This document shows, one piece after another, positions 25,633 to 63,717 of a stretch of DNA of 64,000 bases. The position numbers were made by a program, and so were the translations under genes. This DNA comes from Amoeboaphelidium protococcarum X5. Taxonomy: Eukaryota; Fungi; Aphelidiomycota. The DNA is taken from NCBI GenBank assembly GCA_023515725.1, contig JALDTO010000213.1:504280-568279 (forward strand), given 5' to 3'. Below the pieces are notes generated by a model. The model did not search any database and had not been told where the DNA came from. It was given only the letters and a program-made list of their open reading frames with translations. Position 1 is the stretch's first letter, and the number at the start of each line of letters is the position of its first letter.

Positions 25633-28600
25633 TCACTTGGCATCATTGCTGCCATTTACATTACTCTTCTACTTTGCAGAAGCAGCAGAACTTCCTTGAT
25701 AAGCAGGAGATGTTGCAGCATACTGAGGACTAGTAGGAGAATACTACGGACTAGTAGGTGAATATTGAGGACTTGTCGGCGAATACTGTGGACTAGTTGG
25801 CGAGTACTTGGGAGACGTTGGACTATAACTTGGACTAGTAGGACTATAACTCGGACTGGTCGGTGAATACTTTGGACTAGTTGGACTGTAACTCGGACTC
25901 GTCGGACTGTACGCAGGACTGGTAGGCGAATAGGATGGACTAGTGGGACTGTAAGCAGGACTAGTTGGTGAATATGATGGACTGGTTGGACTGTACGCAG
26001 GACTTGTGGGACTATAACTAGGACTAGTTGGTGAATAGCTAGGACTTGTCGGGGAGTAACTCGGGCTAGTAGGTGAGTAACTCGGACTAGTCGGACTGTA
26101 GCTCGGACTCGTGGGACTGTATCCAGGTGAAGTAGGACTATAACCAGGGGATGTTGGAGAATAAGATGGACTCGTAGGACTATAACCGGGACTTGTTGGA
26201 CTATAGCCAGGACTTGTTGGACTATACCCAGGACTAGTAGGACTATATCCGGGAGATGTCGGTGAATACTGAGGACTCTTTGGCACAAATGGACTTTAAG
26301 CACCAGCACCACCCATAAACGCCGGGCTAGCTGCAGAAGCACCAAGCGGCACCGGAGAGAATCCACCATTCATGTACGAGCCACCACTGATAATAGGAGA
26401 GAACATGGCATCACCAACACCACCACCGCCATTAGCAAAACCATTGGTACCGCTAGGATAGAAAGGTGTCTTCTCCGGATTAATGTAAGGTGTAAATGCA
26501 CCAGGAGTTGCAGAGCCATACTTATCACGAGCACGTATACCAGCTTTCATAGCCATAGCGTTCAAAGCCTTTTCATCCAACATCACCTTAAAGTTACCAG
26601 TGCCCAAAGGAGCAACTTGTCCCATAATAATATTCTCCGCCACACCTTGACACTGATCCAATTCTGCACACGCCGCAGCTTCCATCAGAATCTCCACAGT
26701 TTCTTCAAAGCTAGATCGAGCGAGAGCACTAGTCTCGGCACGATTGATTCCGTGTCTAGTGATGGCCATGAGTATTCCATGCTTTGTCATCACATCACAT
26801 AACATGGACAGGTGGCGATAGTTGACGTAAGAACCATCAAATTCAATGACATTTCTCAACTCTTTCAGCAGAGCAGCACGACCAGCCTCAATACCAAGAG
26901 TCTCTGTGATCTCAACAATATTATTGGAGTATGTACGACCGGCGTCCACATTATCAACAGTCATCACATTCTTCAAGTTAATACCATCAGTCTCTAACAC
27001 CCACTCACTAAACTGCTCATAATCGCCTTGATCATTCAGAGCCACATTCTTCTTCTCAACCATGAACACTCTATTAATTCCCTCAATACCACGCAATGGA
27101 ATCTGATTCAAAATGTGCGCCTCCAACTTTCTGAGGATTGTATCTTCCTCATCCAAAGCATCCTGGTCCACATCCTCCTCATTTCTCAAAATTCTAATTC
27201 TAATAACTGGCACAGGAGCGTTCTCATCCGAGGAGCAAATATCCAAATCATTCTAAAATTCCTCTTTCAATCTACTCACAATCAACTGCGGCTTAGTCTC
27301 CTTGTCCAGCATCATTCTGCGGTCCAAGACAATTCTGAGAACCCACGGCGAGTATCGACTAAAATCTTCATCGACCATCAGAGAGTAATAGGCCAATACT
27401 GTGTCTTCATCCTCCACGATTCTAGTATTCTCAATATCCGGATCATACCAAATCTCTGTTCTATCAGCCACCTTCCGTAAAGTGGTATACTCGATAGCCG
27501 CCTGCACTTCCTTGGCTTTCTATGGCAATTTGGCATAATCACCTTTAAGGTAGATGGTGGTAGATGGCGTCTTGTTATTCCTGGCAACATTTATGATTTC
27601 CTTCAATCGCGGCACACCAAGCGTGACATTCTTACTAGACACACCGGCGTAATGGAAAGTATTTAAAGTCATCTAAGTCGCAGGTTCACCGATAGATTAG
27701 GCAGCAATAGTGCCAACCATCTCATTGGGCGCCACCATAGACTAATGGAATTTGGATTCAATTTCACCCAATATCCAACTAAAAGCCGCCTTGGTCAGAT
27801 GGAACTCTTGAAGAATACGTTTGGTGGCCAGCACAGATCTCAGCAGAATTCTGAATAAGAGCGAAGCATTCTCTTTAAGCTCGGCGGTGCATTTGTCCTG
27901 AGTATTAATAATATTGATTTTGCTAGCGAGCTCTTGAACAGATCTGACGATATCTGCCGGCCTGAGATCGGATCTCTCATTCTTCTTCACTTTAAATATG
28001 CATTGAGCATTCCAAATCAGACGGCTAATGTTCACAGGAAGTGGCCACTAATTATCTCCCTTACGGAATATATGATCTCGCAGCAAGGCGCGGTCCCTAG
28101 ACAATTGTTCAAATTCTTCATCTAATAAAAGTTGAATTTCCGGAGTTTATACCATTTCCTACAGAATTTCTGGCTTCACCGTCTTTGGGGATAGTTGATA
28201 TTTTGAGTCAGAGACATCGATCTTGTACTTCATCTTAAATTTATCTTCATTAAGTCTTAAAGAGTCCAGAGTCTATCGCTCCATACTAGTTCCGTCCATT
28301 CCGTCCTCGCCATAGGCAAACTACAATACTTGACCAAGTGCGTTTCTAACCGAACAGTCATAACCAACAGAAACATCCTCGAGAGCTTTCACCAATCGCC
28401 TCTAGATATAACCGGTCTCGGCAGTCTTAACCGCTGTATCAATCAAACCTTCTCGACCGCCCATTGCATGAAAGAATAGCTCAGATGGAGTCAGTCCTCT
28501 GAGATAAGAATTCTCCACGAAACCACGACTTTCAGGACTTTGATCATCTTTGGTGAAATGCGGAAGTGTTCTGTACTTGAAGCCAAATGGGATTCTTCTA

Positions 28601-31022
28601 CCTTCAACATTCTGCTGACCGACACACGCAGTCATCTATGAGATATTAATAAAAGAGCCTTTACTACCAGCCACCACCATCTACTTGACATTGTTGGCAT
28701 CGTTTAGAGATTTTTAAGCACTAGCACCAGCGATATCACGGGCTCTGTTCAACTCTTAATTAACTCTACTCTCAAAAGACTCTTGTATTGTCATACCAGG
28801 AGATGGCTGAAGCACATTACGGTGAGCTTGGGAAATATATTCAGTCACCTTATTCTTTGCATTCGAAATAGTAGAGGCTACTACTTGCATAGTCTGAGCA
28901 TCTGCAATCGTGTCTCCAATTCCAATACTAAAACCATAACTAAACAGCCAATTATTCACAACTGCCTGACATCCATCAAAGAAGTTGCGAGCCTTTTCAG
29001 GTCCATGCTCTTTCCAAATAACGTGGATGAGAGAATTCTAAGATGTACCAACAGTCTTTTTACAAATGATACCGCACACCAGTTCACCGTCGTAGATAAC
29101 GACCTTGGTGTCACCAGGAGAAATGTCACTGGACTCATTATCTGGATGCTGCGAGTGATAACCAATCATGTTAGTACCTGGTGGAATGATGAGACTGAAA
29201 ATCTACTTTCCCGTCCAAAGCGGTACAGGCTTTATAATCGCAGGCTGCGGCAACTGACCATCCCAATCACGGACCCACATACACAGAGACATCACCATCT
29301 CTTTGGTGAGGAAACTATCGCGCTTGGTAAATTTACGCACACCACACAGCGTATCTTGCACGATACCCATAACAGGACGATTGGCCTATGGAGAGACAAT
29401 CTAGCGAGGCACCATACAAATTTCAGACAGCTCAGCCTTAGTCTCATATGACTGGGGAACATGAAGATTCATCTCATCACCATCAAAATCGGCATTATAC
29501 GGACTGGTGACTGAAAGATTCAACCTGAATGTTGAATACGGCATAACACGAACTCTATGACCCATCATACTCATCTTATGCAAAGATGGCTGTCTATTAA
29601 ACAGCACAATATCACCATCTCTAATGTGTCGCTCAACTTTATCACCCACATTCAGTTAGAGTTCAATCGCACCAGCTCTAGACAAATCAATTCTATCACC
29701 ATTCTATCGAATCACATATCTAGCACCGGGATGCTCATTCGGGCCATTATCGACAGCCTCCTGTAATTAATCCAGGTTAAACGGTGTCACAATCTCTGGG
29801 AATGTCAGAGTCTTGGCAATAGTGCGCGGAACTCCAACTTCGTCAAGAGATATATTAGGATCACCAGTGATGACAGTTCTGGCCGAGAAGTCGACTCTCT
29901 TACCCATAAGATTTCCTCTAAGTCGACCTTCTTTACCCTTGAGACGAGCTCGAATCGACTTGATAGGACGACCACTCTTCTAAGTTGCCTAAGGAATGCC
30001 AGATACATCATTATTCATATAGGTGACAACGTGATACTGAAGCAGAGCCTCATACTCGGCGATAATGTGAGCTGGACTGTCATCAACGTGATTCTTCAAG
30101 TTCTAATTGGCCTTAATAATATCAGCCAACTTATAAGTCAAATCATCCTCACCGCGACTGGCTCCATCAACCTGGATAGAAGGCCTCACAGGTGGAGGTG
30201 GCACTGGAAGCACAGAGATCAACATCCAATCTGGACGTGCCCACTCAGGATCAAGACCCAGCCTTCGACAGTCATCGTCAGATATACGCTTGAATATATT
30301 ATAAACTTTATGACCATTAAATATGTCCTTATTCGGCTCAGCGGAATCCTCAAACTGCTACTGCTACTTGAAAGTGGCCACAAACTTCAAGCCCTCCTTC
30401 TTGTACGTTGGCTGCACTGCGCCACATCCGGATCGTTTCTGCGACGATGAAGAAACGTTTTGTGAATCATCGCCCGTCGCCGCTTTCTGCCCGCTCGCCT
30501 CGATCACACTTCCCTCGCACATCTGCTTCCCTTTGCAGAGCTCCCACACGGCCCGGAGACGCTTGGACGGATCCTTGATGAACTGAGTCTGCAGAAATCG
30601 AGGACTGTCCTACACACATATAGATAGATAGATAGATAAAAGTGGATAGCGGTATTAGCGAAAACGGTAAAGGGGAACAGGCTTACAGTGTCCACTTTCA
30701 GCTTGGCACATGAATGACAGACGCACTCTAAAATCTTTTTGATTCTAGCCATAAATCCAATATGGAATACCGCTCTCTGCAATTCAACATGTCCAAAGTG
30801 GCCCACGCAATCGTTCATACTCTCCTGACAGGTCAGGCATTTCAAATTTCTATCAACAGTTCCCATACGAGGATCCAATAATCCACCAAGCTTTGGCCGC
30901 CCATTTTCATAAGTCTCTGGGAAATCGACTCGACAAACAGACCAAGCTTTGATCTCTTCTGGAGATAACAATCCAAACTGGAGTTGCTTCACTCTTCTCT
31001 GAGGAGCAGAAGATTTATCCAT
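25633..31022 (-). CDS. RPB1: RNA polymerase II largest subunit; intron 30610-30686
   Basis: [44 protein letters not shown], heptad CTD. Intron GTAAGC...GCTAAT...TAG. Confidence 0.98.
25702..26268 (-). repeat. RPB1 CTD: about 26 YSPTSPx heptads plus one degenerate (21-nt coding repeat)
   Basis: Counted from the translation; position 7 varies among G, S, A, K and Q. Confidence 0.95.
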
Positions 31023-49196: not shown

Positions 49197-51224
49197 ATGC
49201 TTTTCGCGTCCTTAATCTGTATCGCTTCCGTTTTGGTCAATGCCTAAAAGGTCAAATTTGGCGATGAGCAGACGAAATTTGACGGTACTATTGGTGGTCT
49301 TGGTCAGATCATCCCTGTGTCTCTGGACAAGGCTCCTGATACTGACAACTTTGAGGTGCAGTTTGGTAGTGAAGATGTTACTATAGCTCAGTGTAAGCTG
49401 GTGTTCACGCGTTAAAATTGGAATAAGCCGCAGAATCTGCACATTTCTGCTCCCGAGAAGATGGCTGCGTAGGGCACACTGGTCTATACTACTCCCTGCG
49501 GCAAGCCTCAAAATGTTTCGCTGAAGGTTGTTAATGGTAAAAATGATGCAGCTACTTGTAGTGTCACTGGTGATCCTCACGTACTATCTTTCGATGGTGC
49601 AAAGTATGTCTTCACCATTCCGAAAAATCTGCTGGATACTCCTAGCGACACTGTGTACTACATGAGAAGTCCGTATCTTACTGTGTAAGGTCAACAGGGC
49701 GACTGTGGTATGGCTGCTACTTGTACCAAGTCTTTGGGTATTCGGTTTTTGGACTAGTTCATCCTGGTCACCACCTCTTACTCTCAAGGGAAGGCTACGA
49801 CTACTTACACCCCCTATGGCAACAAGGACAGAATTACAGCTACTGTCAAGGATAATCAGCTGCTGTTCAACATCAATGGTGTGGCTATGATTTCTGTCAA
49901 GTGGGGTGCCATTAACAACATTGCTTATCTGAACAATTTCATTACGTTGAATTCTGCTTTTGAAAAGACCATTTCTGGTATGTGTGGTAACTTCAACAAG
50001 GATGGTAAGGATTGTATGTCTATTGAGCAGTGTGGCGCGTTGGTTCCTCCAGCTGAGAGAATCACCAACTGTGCTGCTGGTCGTTGTCCATAGGCCATTG
50101 TCCTGCAGAAGTGTAAACTACCAACTCAGTCTGCATCTTGCGCTGTTACCACCACCACCACTAAGGTACCGACTACTACCACTGTTCCTGTCAGTGCTGC
50201 TACCGTTGAGTCCACAACTACCACTACCCAAAAGGCTACTACCACCACGTCTCTGATTGTGAAGACCAGCACTACCACTGTACCGGTCAGTGCTGCTACT
50301 GTAGAATCCACCTCCACCACCGCACCTTTGGTGTCGACTCAGAAGACTTCCACTTCCGTTATTGGCACTGTTGTAACTACTACATCTGGTGCTGTAAATC
50401 CTCCGGCTTACCAATCCTCTCCTGTCGTAAGTGGCACAGCCGTCGTAAGCTCATCCCCTGCAGTGGGATCAACTTCTACCGTAGTCAATCCGCCAGCTTA
50501 CAAGTCTTCTCCTGTCGTAAGTGGCACAGCTATAGTCAGTTCATCTCCTGCAGTGAGATCAACTTCTACTGTGGTCAATCCACCAGCTTACTTATCCTCA
50601 CCTCCTGCTGGCGGTAATACCCCTGCTTACTAGACTCCGTCTGCATCAAAGACTTAAGTCGTATCATCTACTCTCGTTGTTAGCAGCGTATCTACCGTTG
50701 TAGGAATCAGTACTGAGACTCCAACCCATAGCGTGCCACCAAGTGCTCCAACTCCTATACCTCCGCCACCTCCTATGCCTGTCCCAACCCCAAATTTGGA
50801 TAATGCACCATGTCAAGCTCTGTTGGACGTCAAGGTATCTTGTAAGCTTGATGTCAAAATCTTCTTTGAATGGTGTTTGGATGCCACAAATCCTCTCTAG
50901 GCCTCTATGTATGTCAAAGCTTATGGCGAAAGTATGCACAGTATCTGTGAGACTCAAAAGGCTGTGACCGTAGTGCCTGTGGATGAGGTCCGCAATTATG
51001 CTACTTGTGAGTAGAAGATCATTGAGAATCCAAAAGCAGTCGAGGTGGCAAAGGATGCTGGTATCAACTACGGCAACTTCACCCCTATCAAGGATGTGAA
51101 GAAGTGTATCGCTGATATTAATCTGTCAGATATCTAGGATGCTATAATGGGTAGTGGCGCGTCTAACGTGGCAATCAGCGCGTTGTTCGCTGCCATCCCT
51201 GCTTTAATGCTGATGATGTTGTGA
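49197..51224 (+). CDS. GPI-anchored VWD-domain mucin-like surface protein A
   Basis: Signal peptide; LVFTRQNWNKPQ Ig/Calx-like motif; VWD motifs CSVTGDPHVLSFDG and GMCGNFN; Thr/Ser/Pro stalk; Cys domain; hydrophobic tail. Confidence 0.85.
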
Positions 51225-52384: not shown

Positions 52385-54409
52385 ATGCTTCTCGCGTCCT
52401 TAATCTGCATTGCCTCCGTCTTGGTCAATGCTTAGCAGGTGAAATTTGGTGATCAGTTTACTTAATTTGATGGCACCATGAGCAGTCTAGGTCAGACTGT
52501 GCCTGTGTCTCTGGACAAGGCTCCTGATACTGATGACTTTGAGGTGGTCTTTGGTAGTAATGAGATCACCATTGCACAATGCAAGCTGGTGTTCACGCGT
52601 CAGAATTGGAACAAGCCTCAGAATCTGCAAATCTCTGCTCCTGGAAAAATGGTCTAGAATGCCAAGCTGGTGTACACCACTCCCTGCAGTAAGCCTTAGG
52701 AGGTAGCCTTGAAGGTTGTAAACGGTATTGATCGCGCAGCTTCTTGTAGTGTCACTGGTGATCCTCACGTCCTGACGTTTGATGGTGTCAACTACAGTTT
52801 CACAATCCCGAAAAATTTGCTGGATACTCCTGCTGACGCGGTTTACTACGTCAAAAGTCCATATTTGACTGTACAAGGTCAATAAGGTGATTGTGGCATG
52901 GCTCTTACCTGTACTAAATCGCTGGGTATCCGTTTTCTGGATTAGTTCATCCTTGTTACCACGTTTTTCTCTGGTGGAAAGGTTACGACTACCTATACTC
53001 CGTACGGTAATAAGGACAGAATCACTGCTACTGTTTAGGATAATCAACTGCTGTTTAACATCAACGGTGTGGCAATGATTTCTGTCTAGTGGGGTGCGGT
53101 TAACAACATTGCCTACCTGAATAACTTTATCACGCTGAACTCTGCGTTTGAAAAGTCTGTCTCTGGTATGTGTGGTAATTATAACAAGGACCGCATGGAT
53201 TGTCAGTCTGTCGATCAATGTAGCGCGGTGGTTCCCCCATCTGAGAGAATTATGAACTGTGCTGCCGGTCGTTGTCCTCAGGCTTAGACGCTGGAACAGT
53301 GCCAAGTGCCATCTCAGCCTGCATCCTGCGCTTTTACCTCCACCACTACTACTACCACCAAGGGGACAACTACTACTACCACCACCACCACCAAGGTACC
53401 GACTACTACCACTGTTCCTGTCAGTGCTGCTACTATTGAGTCCACCACTACTACCAGTAAGCTTACTACCACCACGTCTCTGATTGTGAAGACCAGCACT
53501 ACCACCGTTCCTGTCAGTGCTGCTACTGTTAAATCGACATCCACCACTACCACTACCAAAATTAATGGTTCACTGGGATCTACTACTACTACCGCACCTT
53601 TGGTGTCGACTCAGAAGACTTCCACTTCCGTCATTGGCACTTCTGTAACTACTACATCTGGTGCTGTAAATCCTCCGGCTTACCAATCCTCTCCTGTCGT
53701 AAGTGGCACAGCCGTCGTAAGCTCATCCCCTGCAGTGGGATCAACTTCTACCGTAGTCAATCCGCCAGCTTACTAATCCTCACCTCCTGCTGGCGGTAAT
53801 ACTCCTGCTTACTAGACTCCGTCTGCATCTAAGACTTAAGTCGTATCATCTACTCTCGTTGTTAACAGCGTATCCTCAGTTGGGTCAGGCGTATCTACCG
53901 TTGCAGGAGTCAGCACTGAGACTCCAACCCATAGCGTGCCACCAAGTGCTCCAACTCCAGTACCTGCGCCTCCTCCAACCTTGAACAATGCCCCATGTCA
54001 AGCTCTGTTGGACATCAAGTTGTCTTGTAAGCTGGAAGTAAAGATCTTCTTTGAATGGTGTTTGGATGCTACAAATCCTCTTCAGGCTTCTATGTATGTC
54101 AAGGCTTACAGTCAAAGTATGCACAGTATCTGTGACACTCAGAAGGCTGTTGTTGGAGTTCCTGCAGATGATGCTCGCGAGTACGCTACTTGTGAGTAGA
54201 AGGTCACTGAGAATCCGAAAGCTGTTGAGGTGGCAAAGGATGCTGGTATCAATTATGGCAATTTCACTCCTATCAAGGATGTAAAGAAGTGTATCGCTGA
54301 TATTAATCTGTCAGATATCTAGGATGCTATAATGGGTAATGGTGCGTCTACTGTGGCTATCAGCGCGTTGTTCGCTGCGATCCCTGCTCTGATGTTGATG
54401 ATGTTGTGA
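52385..54409 (+). CDS. GPI-anchored VWD-domain mucin-like surface protein B (tandem paralogue of A)
   Basis: Colinear with gene A; CSVTGDPHVLTFDG, GMCGNYN; one frame to TGA. Confidence 0.85.
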
Positions 54410-55162: not shown

Positions 55163-56137
55163 ATGCGTGTCGCTGCCCTTATCTGTGTTGCTGCTACCCT
55201 GGCTTCTGCTCAAAGAGTCCTATTTGGGGAGAAGAAGGCCAAATTTGATGGTGCTCTGCAAAGCGTCGGCCTGGTTGTCCCGGTTACTCTGAGCAAGGCT
55301 CCTGATACAGAAACTTTTGTCGTCAATGTATCCAGCGATGATCTTACCTTTGCCAACTGCTCTCTGACCTTTACTCCTCAAAACTTTGACTAGCCTTAGG
55401 AGTTGGTCATCACTAGTCCTGGTAAAGACTTTGCAAAGTCCTCCTTGAAGTATACTACTCCTTGTGCCAAGCCTAAGAATGAGGTACTGAAATTTGCTAA
55501 GCCTGGAAATAGTGGCAAGACTGCTACGTGTTCTATTGATGTAGGTAGTCCTCGCGTGACAACCTTTGATGGAGTCGCCTATTAGTTTACAATTCCTAGA
55601 AATCTGCTTGACACTCCTTCAGATACCGTCTACTACTTCAAGAGTCCGTTCTTGTAGATTTAAGGCTAGTAAGGAGATTGCGGCGTGTCTTTAACGTGCA
55701 CTAAGTCAATAAGCGTAAAATTTTTGGACTAGTTTCTTACGATTGTACCTTGGCTTAATAGTCCTTTGTCGCTGTCCAAGTTTGGTACTGATGGCCGTCT
55801 AGTCATTGAAATGACCCCTGATAGTACTGGTGCAGTAATTAAGGCCAAAGATTTTGCCGTCATCACATTGTCCAGTTCTTCGGAGAATAATGTTGCGTAT
55901 CTGACCTTCAAGATTGATCTGGCTGCTGATTTTGCTTCCACTACCTCTGGCATGTGCGGTAATTTCAATGGAGATAGCGCTGACTGTCAGAGTGTTCTTG
56001 ACTGCGGGGCCATTGTTCCTCCAAGCGAAAGAATTCTTTTTTGCTTAGCTGGCAGATGTCCTCAGACTACACCTCTGCAGCAATGCCCTTTGACGCCTCC
56101 ATCAACTGACTGCGGCAAGAAGAACAACAACAAGTGA
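55163..56137 (+). CDS. Secreted short VWD protein C (no stalk, no GPI signal)
   Basis: Signal peptide MRVAALICVAATLASA, CSIDVGSPRVTTFDG, GMCGNFNGD; ends KKNNNK TGA. Confidence 0.85.
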
Positions 56138-58242: not shown

Positions 58243-61200
58243 ATGAAGGAATTGGTAGTGGATAATCAAAAGAAGAGAGTGAAAACTATTGAATTTGGTA
58301 TTCTGAATGCGAATGAGGTTTAGGCATAGTCGGAGTTGGAGATTTATAATCGCGATTTTTACAATCCAGTCAATAGAACGCCTGCGCGTGGTGGTATCTT
58401 GGATCCAAAGATGGGCGTGTCTGGCAAAGACGCCACTTGTGAGACGTGTGGTCTGAAGCTTGCAGAGTGTGCTGGTCATTGGGGATTTATCCGCCTTGCT
58501 TTACCAGTGTTCCACGCTGGATTCTTCAAGGCAACTCAGTAAATTCTGCAGCAAATCTGTAAAAATTGCTCTAAAGTATTGTTGGAGGTGGATGATAGAC
58601 GCGCTTACTTGAGAAAGTTGAGGAATCCCAGCTTGGATAACCCTCAGAAAATGGCCATCATTAAAGCGATAACCAGCGCGTGTAAGAAGGTACACACCTG
58701 TCCGTACTGTGGAGATTTGAATGGTACGGTGAAGAAGGCTGGCGTTTTGCGCCTGGTGCATGAAAAGTACAAATCAAAGTCCAAGTCTGCTGAGTTTGAG
58801 CTGGCAAAGAATTAATTTTATCAAAAGTTTAATAAGCTATGCCAGGAATCTCCAGAGTTTAAGGCGCATCTGCAGAAAGCGTAGGACGATCTCACTCCGC
58901 TCAAGGTGTTTGATCTATTCACCCGTATCTCCTCAGAGGATTGTGAACTCCTTGGTCTGAATGTGGACAGCGGTCGGCCAGAAACTTTTCTATGGACCAC
59001 CATTCCTGTGCCTCCAGTCTGTATTCGTCCCTCTGTTGCAATGGACAAGGGTGACGCGGGTAGTAATGAAGATGATATCACTGTGAAGTTGGCTGAAGCG
59101 ATTATGCTTAACTAGATGATATTGAAGTCCCTGCAGGATGGTGATACTAGTCTACGCGTATCTGAGGATTGGGAGTTATTGCAGCTTACCCTTGCTCAGT
59201 TGGTCAATTCTGAGCTGCCTAATCTTGCCAATGCAACACAGACTACAAAGTGGATCAGGGGTGTCTGTCAGCGTCTGAAAGGTAAGCAGGGTAGATTTAG
59301 AGGTAATCTAAGTGGTAAACGTGTGGATTTCTCAGCCAGAACTGTGATCAGTCCGGATCCGAATCTGCGCATTGATCAGGTTGCTGTGCCTGATTTGGTG
59401 GCTAAAACTCTTACATATACTGAGGTTGTTACCGAGTTTAATATCTAAAGACTGAGATAGTGCGTAATCAATGGGCCTGATAAGCATCCTGGTGCCAATT
59501 TCATGTAATAGTAAGGTAAACCGAAGCGATTCTTGAAATTTGTGGTTGATCGCTCACAGTTGGCCAGGGAGTTGAAGATTGGAGATGAAGTGGAACGGCA
59601 TTTGATGGATGGCGATGTGGTGCTGTTCAATCGGTAGCCATCTTTACACAAGCTGAGTATCATGTCATTCTATGCCATTGTCAAACCATGGAAGACCTTC
59701 CGCTTCAATGAGTGTGTATGTACCCCCTTCAACGCGGACTTTGACGGCGATGAAATGAATTTGCATGTACCATAGACGGAGGAGGCTAAAGCTGAGGCTG
59801 TTGTTCTTATGGGATCGAAGAATAATCTCGTCACACCTCGTAATGGGTAGCCTCTTATTGCCGCCACGCAAGATTTTATTACTGGAGCTTATTTGATTAC
59901 TAAGAAGGATTCGTTTTATACCAAGGAGGAATTTGTTTAAATCTGCTGCTCCATGTTTGATGCTAATGAACGTATAGATCTTCCTGATCCGGTGATATTG
60001 AAGCCTCAAGTGTTATATACGGGGAAATAGGTGTTCAATATTCTGATGCGTCCCAATAAATAAAGCCAAGTATTTATAAATTTGGAGTGTAAGAATAAGT
60101 CATTCGTTAAGAATCCAGATATTCCTGTATACAAGTGCCCGAATGATGGCTGGGTTGCTGTGCATAATAGTGAAGTCCTATCTGGTGTCATTGACAAGAG
60201 TATAGTTGGTGATGGTAACAAAGACTCGATTCTGTATGTGGCCCTGAAAGATTATGGACCCGAAGTTGCAGGATTTTTTATGAATCGACTGGCAAAGTTG
60301 TGTGCTCGATTCATGCAGAACCGGGGCTTCTCCATCGGACTGGAGGACGTGGCGCCTGGCGAACGTCTGTGGCAGAGGCGTGATGAGGTGATCAAGGCTG
60401 GCTATCAGGAATGTGATGGCTACATTGAGCAATATAAACAAGGCACTCTGCAGTGTCAGGCTGGTTGTAATGAAGATCAGACTCTGGAGGCATAAATGTC
60501 TGGTAAGTTGAGTAAGATTCGTGATGATCTTGGTTAGATCTGTCTATAAGAGCTGAACAAGCACAATTCTCCCCTAATTATGGCTGTGTGTGGTTCTAAA
60601 GGTTCCAAAATTAATGTGTGTCAAATGACAGCATGTGTCGGACAGCAGATTATCAATGGTAGTAGAATAGCTGATGGTTTCGATGAACGTACTCTGCCAC
60701 ACTTTAAACGTCGTTCCAGAGACCCGGCGTCAAAGGGATTTGTGAAGAACTCCTTCTATACCGGAATGTCTCCTACAGAATTCTTCTTCCACGCAGCATC
60801 TGGACGTGAAGGTTTGGTGGATACTTCTGTGAAGAGTGTCACTGGAGACACGGCGTTGGTTATCATTGAAGATGGAAAGTCGAAGCGTGTCCTCATTGGA
60901 GATTGGATTGATTCTTTGATGTCCGTGAATGGCAATCATGTTACTCTGTAGTAGGAGTATGATACAGAGTTGTTAAGAATCGGTAATGATGCCGCGGTTA
61001 GAAATGAAGTGTACATTCCAACCACTAATTCCGATGGATATGTATCGTGGGCTCAAGTCACTGCTGTGACGCGTCACGATCCTGGTGAAGTTCTGTATGA
61101 AGTCAAGACTAGAGGTGGTCGTTCTGTGACAGTTGTTGAATCAAAGTCTCTATTGATATATGACAAGATCACTAGAAAGTTTGAAGAGAAGCTGACTTCA

Positions 61201-63717
61201 TAGATTGTCATTGGAGATCAAATGCCAGTGACTATGTAGTTGGCTGAGCCTGCTGTCACTGTTCAGTATGTTGATATGCATGATTATCTACCTGAAGATG
61301 TTTATGCTAATGGTTTGGATGAGTGTGGGCGCCTTCCTAACTAATTTCAATTGGATTATGAGAATGGAGTGTTTGTTGGACTTTATGTGGCTTAAGGTAA
61401 CTATGATATCTAGTCTGGACGGATCAGCATCTCTAGTAATGACAAAAATGTGCAGAATTTTGTTGAAAGTTGGTTTGATAAGCTGAACATACCTTGGGAG
61501 CATACAACCGTAAAGAGTCCTAAGGGCGGAGTACGCTAATCTATCAGTGGCTGTTCGATGCTTTTCGCCTGGTTTATGAAGAAGTTAATTGGATCTGATT
61601 ATGGTTAAAAGTTTGTGCCTGATGTTGCTTTTTCTGCCCCAATGGAATTTGTTATCGGCCTTCTCAATGGCTACTTTACTGAAAATGGATCAGTTTGTGA
61701 GTACATTATTGATTCCGGTGCTGCATCTCTGCGTCTCTCTGAAGGTATTGCGATGCTATGTAGTCGCTTGGGTGCGTTTGGAAGTATTCAAGTCGATGAT
61801 AGTGAGTCCAATGAGTTTGATAATGTTCTCGCTTAACATCGCGTTGTATTTTGTGCACAATGGGCTCAGGTGCTGAAAGATAATCTTTCTATGCCAATTC
61901 CTGAAAAAGATAGGTAATTGAAGTCAATGCAGTGTTCTCTTCAACATCGCAATTACACTTTTCAGAATGATGTTGTGTTGGATGAGATTGTGGAGATTGT
62001 CAAAATGCCTGCTCAGCCTGGTATGAAAGTGTACGATCTGACTGTGCCATCTACTCTGAATTTCGGCTTGGCTAATGGTTTGCATGTATTTGACACGGCC
62101 GAGACTGGTTACATGCAGCGTAGACTGATGAAAGCATTGGAAGATTTATCCGTGAGCTATGACTATAGTGTGAGAAGTAGTGTCGGATCAATGATACAGT
62201 TTGAGTATGGAAATGATAAACTGGACCCCACGTCAATGGAAGGTAATGATGTGCCTGTGGATTTTAATAAGAATTTTCTGGCTTGTATGAATCTGCATAG
62301 AGCGCAAGATGATGATCTGCTTCTATTACCAGATTAAGTATGTGACTTGGTTAAGCAATTGGTCATGGATGGAGAGTTTCTATAGCATTGCCCTTAGCAG
62401 TATGGCGACAGTGTAGTTGCTTTTGTACAAGATAAAGTGGCTCCTAAGGCATCGACTCCTGGCTTTAAAGTCACGCAAAAGATATTGGAAAACTTTGTCA
62501 ACGTTTGCCGGCGAAAGTATTACAAGTCCAAGATTGAACCTGGATCTGCTGTGGGGGCTCTTGCGGCGCAATCTATTGGTGAGCCAGGTACGTAGATGAC
62601 TTTGAAAACTTTTCACTTTGCCGGTGTCGCGTCTATGAGCATCACCTTAGGTGTGCCGCGTATTAAGGAGATTATCAATGCCTCGAAGCTCATCAAGACT
62701 CCGATCATCACGGCTAAACTTGTTAAGGATGATAATCAGACTGTGGCTAGAATTGTCAAGGGAAGAATTGAGGCGACCAAGTTGGGTCAAGTTGTTGAGT
62801 ACGTGTAGGAAGTGATATCTGGGTCTGCTTGTTATTTAGACCTGAAGGTTGACTGGGAAGCTATACGCCAGTTGCAACTCGAGATTGATGAGAGTTCAAT
62901 ATGTACAGCTATAGCTAAGGCTCCAAAGCTTAAAGTTGGTGCATCAGATATCTAAATGTCAAAGAAGAATCAGGCCATCCGAATCCTGGTGCATGATGCC
63001 AAGAAGGCTGACTCGGCATTCTATGAACTGTAGAGAGTAAAGAGATTGATTACTGATGTTATCATATGCGGAATCCCGACTGTGAATAGAGCTGTGATCA
63101 ATGAACAGCAGGGCAAGAGCGGTCATTATGAACTTTTAGCTGAAGGTTATGGTTTGCGATAGGTGATGACCACCGATGGTGTCGTTGGACTAGAGTCGAC
63201 TAGTAATCACATTGCTGAAGTTGAGTCGGTGCTGGGTATTGAAGCTGCCAGATAATCCATCATCGACTAGATTCAGTATACTATGAGTAGTCACGGTATG
63301 ACAATTGATTCTAGGCATGTGATGATTCTGGCTGATATCATGACATTCAAGGGTGAAGTATTGGGCATAACGCGATTCGGAATTGCCAAGATGAAAGACA
63401 GTGTTCTCATGTTGGCCTCATTTGAGAAGACCACTGATCACCTCTTTGACGCGTCCACCTACTCTAAAGTTGACCACATTGAGGGAGTATCTGAGCGTAT
63501 TATCATGGGTGTGCACATGAATGTCGGTACTGGAGCGTTCAAGATTCTTCAATAAGTTGACTTGTCCGAAGATAAGAACTGTGGCAGTGATTAAGGTTCT
63601 TCGGCATTATAGAAGAAATCTTATCCATTAAAAGATCAAAAGTAGCAGTTATTATATCAAAGACCTTTGCTGTTTGATGTGCCCGAGTATCATCCATCCA
63701 TCTTTGCACAAGGTTGA
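58243..63717 (+). CDS. RPC1: RNA polymerase III largest subunit, intein-containing precursor
   Basis: MKELV start, [85 protein letters not shown]. Confidence 0.97.
60835..62094 (+). mobile_element. 420-aa intein with a degenerate LAGLIDADG homing endonuclease, inserted in the RPC1 bridge helix
   Basis: Interrupts [10 protein letters not shown]|TAETGY. Starts SVTGDT; block F KVYDLTV; ends [12 protein letters not shown]; +1 residue Thr. Internal motifs [39 protein letters not shown]. Confidence 0.93.

Follow-up and report, generated by a model that had tools for sequence, protein, structure and literature searches.

A putative intein of the giant-virus RPB1 type in the bridge helix of RNA polymerase III of the aphelid Amoeboaphelidium protococcarum

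The gene RPC1, which encodes the largest of the subunits of RNA polymerase III (Pol III), carries a 1260-nucleotide in-frame insert in its bridge-helix segment in the aphelid Amoeboaphelidium protococcarum X5. The gene locates on contig JALDTO010000213.1 of assembly GCA_023515725.1, within a stretch of 64,000 nucleotides (contig positions 504,280 to 568,279, forward strand) that we analyzed as a whole and refer to as the window; all positions below are counted from its first nucleotide. A preliminary description of this DNA had read the insert as an intein that lacks several canonical splicing residues. Is the insert a genuine intein, where does it come from, and can it still leave the protein? 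On balance, we consider it likely that the insert is a true member of an intein family fixed in A. protococcarum RPC1, that it removes itself from the protein, that its homing endonuclease has decayed, and that it originated in a giant virus. The viral kinship and the dead homing endonuclease are features beyond those that the preliminary description had seen.

The gene, the insert and the comparator site are arranged as follows.

58243–63717, plus strand: RPC1 gene (RNA polymerase III largest subunit), 1824 codons and a TGA stop, from PDB and Pfam matches
58243–60834, plus strand: N-extein, 864 residues, from translation
60835–62094, plus strand: intein, 420 residues, Ser1 to Asp420 (RPC1 residues 865–1284), from homology and the split Pfam domain
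62095–63714, plus strand: C-extein, 540 residues with Thr+1 as the first residue, from translation and Pfam
28408–28440, minus strand: empty homologous site in RPB1, serving as comparator, from translation

Reading this gene depends on the genetic code. The open reading frames of the window are open only when TAA and TAG are taken as sense codons and TGA as the sole stop. At conserved polymerase positions TAA and TAG fall on glutamine, for example in GEPGTQMTL, indicating that both codons encode Gln. A ciliate as the source of this DNA was considered and rejected, the organism being an aphelid, a group placed in Fungi incertae sedis. The insert and the gene were thus translated with code 6 in our own scripts. 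A tRNA scan of the 64-kb window found none. Read with this code, the RPC1 reading frame is free of introns and contains 45 in-frame TAA/TAG codons, with no internal TGA or frameshift and with all polymerase motifs intact. The exteins and the stop-free pieces of the insert were searched separately. A 143-residue extein piece matches yeast RPC1 (5fj8_A) in the PDB at an E-value of 5e-44 and human RPC1 at 3e-32, whereas the best RPB1 chain scores only 7e-8. The host gene is therefore assigned to the largest subunit of Pol III. Pfam Rpb1 domains 4 and 5 are found in the gene, and the trigger-loop site GEPGTQMTLKTFH in the C-extein is uninterrupted.

Retranslation of both junctions (60802–60948 and 61966–62127) returned exactly the boundaries proposed before, 60835 to 62094, which enclose 420 codons in frame and split the motif DTSVK|TAETGY. 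The insert starts with Ser (SVTGDTALV...) and ends with Phe-Asp, and Thr follows, in agreement with the preliminary description. The nucleophile at position 1 and that at the start of the C-extein, Ser1 and Thr+1, are thus both present. The Pfam domain RNA_pol_Rpb1_5 is split exactly at the insert, with profile positions 1–25 upstream and 24–66 downstream. No TGA occurs among the 420 codons in the frame of the insert, and the other two forward frames hold 14 and 34. The open frame together with the homology described below is far beyond chance. The same motif is uninterrupted in the RPB1 gene of the window, as noted earlier, as well as in 113 of 120 RPC1 fragments, so the insertion is precise, in frame and at a conserved host site. 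A string comparison of the flanks (30 + 30 nucleotides) showed that the RPB1 and RPC1 sites are identical at 45 of 60 nucleotides, with the RPB1 site empty. The RPB1 gene itself (25636–31022, minus strand) contains a single intron, GTAAGC...TAG, near 30.6 kb and encodes a long C-terminal domain of canonical YSPTSPS repeats.

Searches beyond the window connect the insert to a large family. With an 82-residue piece of the insert (60955–61200) as the query against a library of 1.84 billion representative proteins, we obtained 425 matches at E ≤ 1e-3, 254 of them at E ≤ 1e-10, with the best at 2e-32. The whole 420-residue intein aligns end to end, at 33–44% identity, with inserts in large RNA-polymerase subunits. 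The nearest relative found, P0003, is 44% identical overall and 61% identical in the splicing domain. Nearly all relatives share the junction ...DTA[VI]K | SVTG/W[DE]T ... GLANGL[HQ]V[RV]D | T[AS]xxGY. A second search seeded with the P0003 intein returned 1,898 clusters at E ≤ 1e-10, and a scan of IMG/VR gave 493 stretches confirmed by tblastn, many of which lie in GVMAG giant-virus genomes. The hosts of the family are RPB1-like; they are 30–45% identical to the RPB1 of the window and carry Rpb1 domains 6 and 7. Among 117 hosts, 113 score higher against RPB1 and four score marginally higher against RPC1, none of them being clearly RPC1-like. One host lies on a 40-kb soil contig among genes for PCNA, eIF4E, an intein-bearing RFC and DUF5760, a neighborhood typical of giant viruses. 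In GTDB, a collection of genomes from bacteria and archaea, a scan gave 10 loci (L082–L091), all in metagenome-assembled genomes labeled as bacteria and none in an archaeal isolate. Their labels include Patescibacteria, Bacteroidota, Planctomycetota and Legionellales, and they are probably mis-binned giant-virus contigs.

Judged by its site, its full-length homology and its invariant residues, the insert of the window belongs to this giant-virus RPB1 bridge-helix family, and its own host is not a viral RPB1. We also looked for the same intein in other RPC1 genes with a 133-residue junction piece, a search that saw fragments and not full-length proteins. It returned 235 fragments; of the best 120, 113 were uninterrupted at the site and none carried the intein. 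By these searches, the aphelid RPC1 copy is the only cellular member of the family that we found. The split domain and the family homology together support the earlier view that an intein occupies the bridge helix of nuclear RPC1.

Several observations concern the viral genes themselves. Many giant-virus RPB1 proteins carry two or three inteins. A second viral site is in the trigger loop (GEPxTQ[LM]TLN|SV.W.T...D|TFH), where the inteins have the same Ser...Asp|Thr termini; examples are P0039:719-1237, P0055:1133-1660 and P0107:678-1062, all in viral RPB1 proteins. In addition, many viral RPB1 gene calls (L001 and many of P0001–P0150) begin at Rpb1 domain 3, with the intein at about residue 330–360, which suggests that those viruses have an RPB1 gene split or interrupted upstream.

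The splicing motifs of the window intein, placed by the family alignment unless another source is given, are listed below.

60835–60873, plus strand: block A, with Ser1 as the nucleophile (AGT, 60835–60837) and Thr6, which is invariant in the family
61069–61083, plus strand: motif T79-R80-H81-D82-P83, with T, R and H unchanged across 117 members of the family
61126–61158, plus strand: block B, with Val101 at B:7 and Lys104 (AAG, 61144–61146) at B:10, the canonical His position, from profile alignment
61966–62064, plus strand: block F region, with Asp401 at F:4 and Leu408 instead of the usual His at F:13
62065–62094, plus strand: block G, with penultimate Phe419 and terminal Asp420 (GAC, 62092–62094)

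The absence of the block B His, pointed out in the preliminary description, holds under the profile alignment, because V-E-S-K (residues 101–104) falls where the TFIIB inteins and PI-PkoII have T-x-x-H when the family profile is aligned to them. The missing penultimate His and terminal Asn are likewise borne out by Phe419-Asp420. Beyond the residues listed earlier, the His at F:13 is also absent. The window intein therefore departs from the canonical class 1 set at B:10 (Lys104), F:13 (Leu408) and G:6/G:7 (Phe419-Asp420), and it keeps the Asp at F:4 (Asp401), as do all 117 aligned family members. Assignment to class 2 or class 3 is ruled out; Ser1 is present instead of Ala1, and F:4 is Asp instead of the Cys that, with the WCT triad, marks class 3. 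We also considered whether the His of the VTRHD motif replaces that of block B. Counterparts of this motif appear in canonical inteins by profile alignment, namely SRH in the TFIIB inteins and IRHD in PI-PkoII. Since these relatives keep the block B His and have the motif as well, the VTRHD His is unlikely to be a family-specific substitute.

Are these residues peculiar to the aphelid element? For 224 members we set the junctions by the extein motifs alone, which avoids alignment bias. The first residue is Ser in 224 of 224, and the last is Asp in 223, with a single Asn (P0167). At the penultimate position we count 143 Arg, 49 Val, 18 Tyr, one His and one Phe. In the alignment of 117 members, B:10 is Lys in 95 (81%), Gln in nine, His in eight and Glu in two; B:7 shows Thr (71 members), Ala (22) and Val (19); and 85 members have Leu at F:13. 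The atypical residues noticed earlier are thus real, but they are not particular to this copy, since Ser1, the block B Lys, the terminal Asp and Thr+1 are all near-invariant in the giant-virus RPB1 family at the same site. As they are inherited family traits, whether the chemistry is unusual has to be asked of the whole family instead of a single copy. The sole Asn-ending intein among the 224 same-site members, P0167:842-1326 (...GTGQVVEN|TAETGY), may be a reversion or a separate lineage.

The fold of the family was addressed with profiles and models. The stop-free pieces of the insert gave weak Pfam matches to Intein_splicing (profile positions 34–79 and 112–151) and to LAGLIDADG_3, in the correct order. 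When pieces from the window were searched singly against the PDB, the only matches were weak ones to the inteins of CDC21 and DnaB (E about 1), while the block B piece matched nothing. We then compared a profile of 25 family mini-inteins with solved inteins, and it matched the TFIIB mini-inteins (5o9i) at 2e-20 and PI-PkoII (2cw7) at 4e-19, aligning the family V-T-E-S-K-S with V-T-G-S-H-S and I-T-S-G-H-S of the TFIIB inteins and PI-PkoII. Another profile, built from 32 full-length members, gave E-values of 6e-28 with PI-PkoII and 4e-15 with the TliVMA endonuclease. The AlphaFold2 model of a 173-residue mini-intein (P0013:351-523), built from a 25-sequence alignment, has a predicted local distance difference test score (pLDDT) of 94.8. 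Its best structural match is TFIIB (5o9i), with a template modeling (TM) score of 0.83, followed by RadA, CDC21-1, VMA and KlbA, with hedgehog lower. The model of the 485-residue P0003 intein (pLDDT 94.1) matches the bifunctional inteins PI-PkoII, TliVMA, PI-PfuI and PI-SceI. The fold prediction proposed in the preliminary description, run here on these two relatives, thus yields confident Hint and Hint-plus-LAGLIDADG models. From these models, at 44–61% identity, and the weak ordered Pfam matches, the window intein is predicted to adopt a Hint fold.

The two parts of the window intein are in different states. Taking as conserved those columns that are at least 90% conserved among the relatives of about 480 residues, we found that the window copy keeps 44 of 46 splicing columns (95.7%; family mean 96.1%, minimum 86%) and matches 68.6% of the endonuclease columns, for which the family minimum is 80%. 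The main lesions of the endonuclease are as follows.

61320–61321, plus strand: deletion of about 65–68 residues relative to the relatives of about 480 residues, from alignment and the P0003 model
61369–61398, plus strand: LAGLIDADG motif 1, with the catalytic acid replaced by Gln187 (TAA, 61393–61395), Glu or Asp in relatives, from alignment
61657–61689, plus strand: LAGLIDADG motif 2, with the catalytic Asp replaced by Asn284 (AAT, 61684–61686), Asp in more than 90% of relatives, from alignment

What the deletion has removed is a helical sub-domain located ahead of the first LAGLIDADG helix. With Q187, N284 and this deletion of about 65 residues, the copy lacks the features of an active LAGLIDADG endonuclease. 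In the tree of splicing domains the terminal branch of the window copy is 0.55 against a median of 0.45, which is ordinary. A splicing domain that stays conserved while the endonuclease decays is the pattern expected of a fixed, immobile intein that would still be required to splice. Splicing is very probably obligatory for this intein, given that its host gene is intact.

The composition of the insert resembles that of its host. Of its 23 Gln codons, 11 are TAA or TAG. In relative codon usage it resembles the exteins, with a correlation of r=0.87, and its GC content at third codon positions (GC3) is 0.37, the 15th percentile among host windows. This value is no outlier and gives no signal of recent foreign origin. 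The extein residues flanking the insert are RPC1-like, and hence there is no sign of co-conversion.

Based on these data, we propose a probable history for the element. A giant-virus RPB1 intein would have moved by ectopic homing into the conserved paralogous site of RPC1. This is the simplest reading since thousands of viral copies stand against one cellular copy. The homing endonuclease would since have decayed, leaving the element immobile. The intein would persist because imprecise loss would wreck an essential gene. In the cell, it would be translated within the RPC1 precursor and then excise itself, restoring the bridge helix.

The chemistry would probably follow the class 1 pathway with oxygen nucleophiles. 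Ser1 would undergo an N-to-O acyl shift, aided by Lys104 at the block B His position and Asp401 at F:4, and the ester would then pass to Thr+1. Asp420 may cyclize to an anhydride, replacing the usual Asn succinimide and freeing the intein, after which an O-to-N shift would finish the peptide bond. The unusual chemistry supposed in the preliminary description is therefore plausible for the window intein, although each deviation alone has a precedent (PMC4031507). We also entertain, as a speculation that we would not expect to hold in full, the idea that the Ser1/Lys(B:10)/Asp(G:7)/Thr+1 inteins found in giant-virus RPB1, and with them the aphelid RPC1 copy, are a mechanistic class of their own. 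Such a class would splice entirely through oxygen esters, need none of the three canonical His and finish with an Asp anhydride, and the aphelid copy would then record a direct virus-to-host transfer between paralogous polymerase subunits.

Four other explanations of the locus were weighed. The strongest of them, which we still regard as unlikely, holds that splicing has been lost and that this RPC1 is a dead or redundant allele or homeologue, with an intein-free RPC1 elsewhere supplying Pol III. Four canonical catalytic residues are absent from the intein, the endonuclease is clearly decaying, and at least three A. protococcarum assemblies exist, all of which would suit a dead copy. Yet the 1824-codon frame has neither TGA nor frameshift and keeps its polymerase motifs. 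The decay is confined to the endonuclease, while the splicing domain is as conserved as in viral members (95.7% versus a mean of 96.1%). Moreover, absence of the canonical residues is usual among the viral members of the family, which reside in essential genes. Much less probable still is a recently arrived intein that remains mobile through an active homing endonuclease. The copy does keep the two LAGLIDADG helices and most of the endonuclease core, but Q187 and N284 stand in place of the two catalytic acids, and about 65 residues forming a conserved sub-domain are gone. Host-like codon usage, with 11 Gln codons written as TAA or TAG, a nearest found relative that is just 44% identical, and the similar RPB1 site in the window (45/60 nucleotides identical) that stands empty also speak against recent mobility.

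The other two explanations have next to no weight in our assessment. Removal of the segment 60835–62094 from the RNA as an intron would be in keeping with a genome that has spliceosomal introns, such as that of RPB1; however, the boundaries read AGT...GAC and not GT...AG, the segment is open and in phase with the host, and it is homologous to inteins from the first residue to the last. An assembly chimera or contamination with giant-virus DNA is about as improbable. It is true that all relatives found are viral or metagenomic and that giant-virus contigs do contaminate other genome bins, but the insert sits in phase inside RPC1-specific exteins on an 846-kb contig and shows the host genetic code, host-like codon usage and host-like GC3.

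Some points weigh against our preferred reading, a fixed, self-removing intein of likely giant-virus origin. The catalytic roles of Lys104 and Asp420 are proposed from alignment and precedent, and the fold models come from relatives that are 44–61% identical to the window intein. The suggested direction from virus to host is drawn from a single feature, the imbalance in abundance, and the intein tree does not settle the position of the window copy within viral diversity. The in-frame TAA and TAG codons indicate that the insert has evolved under this code, but they cannot date the acquisition, as a virus of the same host would share the code.

Compared with known systems, the giant-virus RPB1 inteins (metagenomic P0003, P0016 and IMG/VR GVMAG contigs) are closest to the insert. 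They share its site (DTAxK|TxxTGY), Ser1, Lys at B:10, the Asp end and Thr+1, and they resemble it over the full length (33–44% identity) with the same LAGLIDADG endonuclease architecture. The insert differs from them in its cellular Pol III host, in its inactivated and partly deleted endonuclease, and in its penultimate Phe in place of mostly Arg or Val. The best curated match of the family is the archaeal RNA polymerase A'' intein (NF011491 / PRK14898), whose host is also a largest-subunit homologue; it scores 1.5e-41 with the P0003 intein (model positions 76–395) and 1.4e-5 with the 82-residue piece from the window. InBase lists the Mja rPol A'' intein (PMC1635734). This archaeal intein sits at another site, in A'', which we infer to be the trigger loop by analogy with the second-site inteins of the viruses. 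The closest solved structures by profile and by fold (TM 0.83), the TFIIB mini-inteins (5o9i, 5o9j) and PI-PkoII (2cw7), share the R-H motif and the block F YDLTVP with the family. In contrast, they keep T-x-x-H in block B, where the giant-virus family has T/V-E-S-K.

Precedents for the single deviations are documented. The block B His was described in a 2014 review as the most conserved intein residue, with two inteins known to lack it, one of which is Tko CDC21-1 (PMC4031507). Like the insert, Tko CDC21-1 has no block B His; it is functional, and a Lys activates its N-terminal junction. That residue, Lys58, is outside the conserved motifs (PMC4031507), whereas the Lys of the insert is at B:10 itself. 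About 5% of functional inteins have no penultimate His, and those that end in Asp, Gln or Glu are thought to cyclize that residue in the third step of the class 1 pathway (PMC4031507). Known inteins with such ends are isolated cases; in the present family, Asp is fixed (223/224) and is accompanied by loss of His at B:10, F:13 and G:6. As to nuclear RNA polymerases, inteins are known in RPA2, RPB2 and RPC2 (PMC1635734). The statement in the preliminary description that the known cases are mostly in second-largest subunits needs a qualification, because largest-subunit cases have already been reported, the Anaeramoeba RPA1 and RPB1 both carrying inteins (PMC10710043). Like the insert, these nuclear polymerase inteins occupy conserved buried sites; unlike it, they lie in other subunits or at other sites. 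Inteins in giant-virus RNA polymerases are also known, for example in Bodo saltans virus (PMC5871332). We found no report of an RPC1 intein in the literature, nor a description there of the combination of Ser1, Lys at B:10 and an Asp end fixed across a huge family.

The family, about 1,900 clusters that reside in essential genes, does without three canonical His, those of block B, block F and the penultimate position, as well as without the terminal Asn. It offers a natural and diverse test bed for how inteins activate both junctions without histidines, and the aphelid copy adds a cellular host in which the existence of Pol III would depend on splicing. That giant-virus RPB1 and a nuclear paralogue share allelic inteins is relevant to the movement of such elements between viruses and eukaryotes. 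Protein engineering could also profit from a compact all-oxygen intein that has neither Cys nor His.

Elsewhere in the window, three tandem paralogues lie on the plus strand (49197–51221, 52385–54406 and 55163–56134) and have similar N-termini that resemble signal peptides (ML.ASLICIASVLVNAQ...). In the first two, the hydrophobic C-terminus (...ISALFAAIPALMLMML) is common to both as well. The tandem paralogues may be secreted or glycosylphosphatidylinositol (GPI)-anchored surface proteins.

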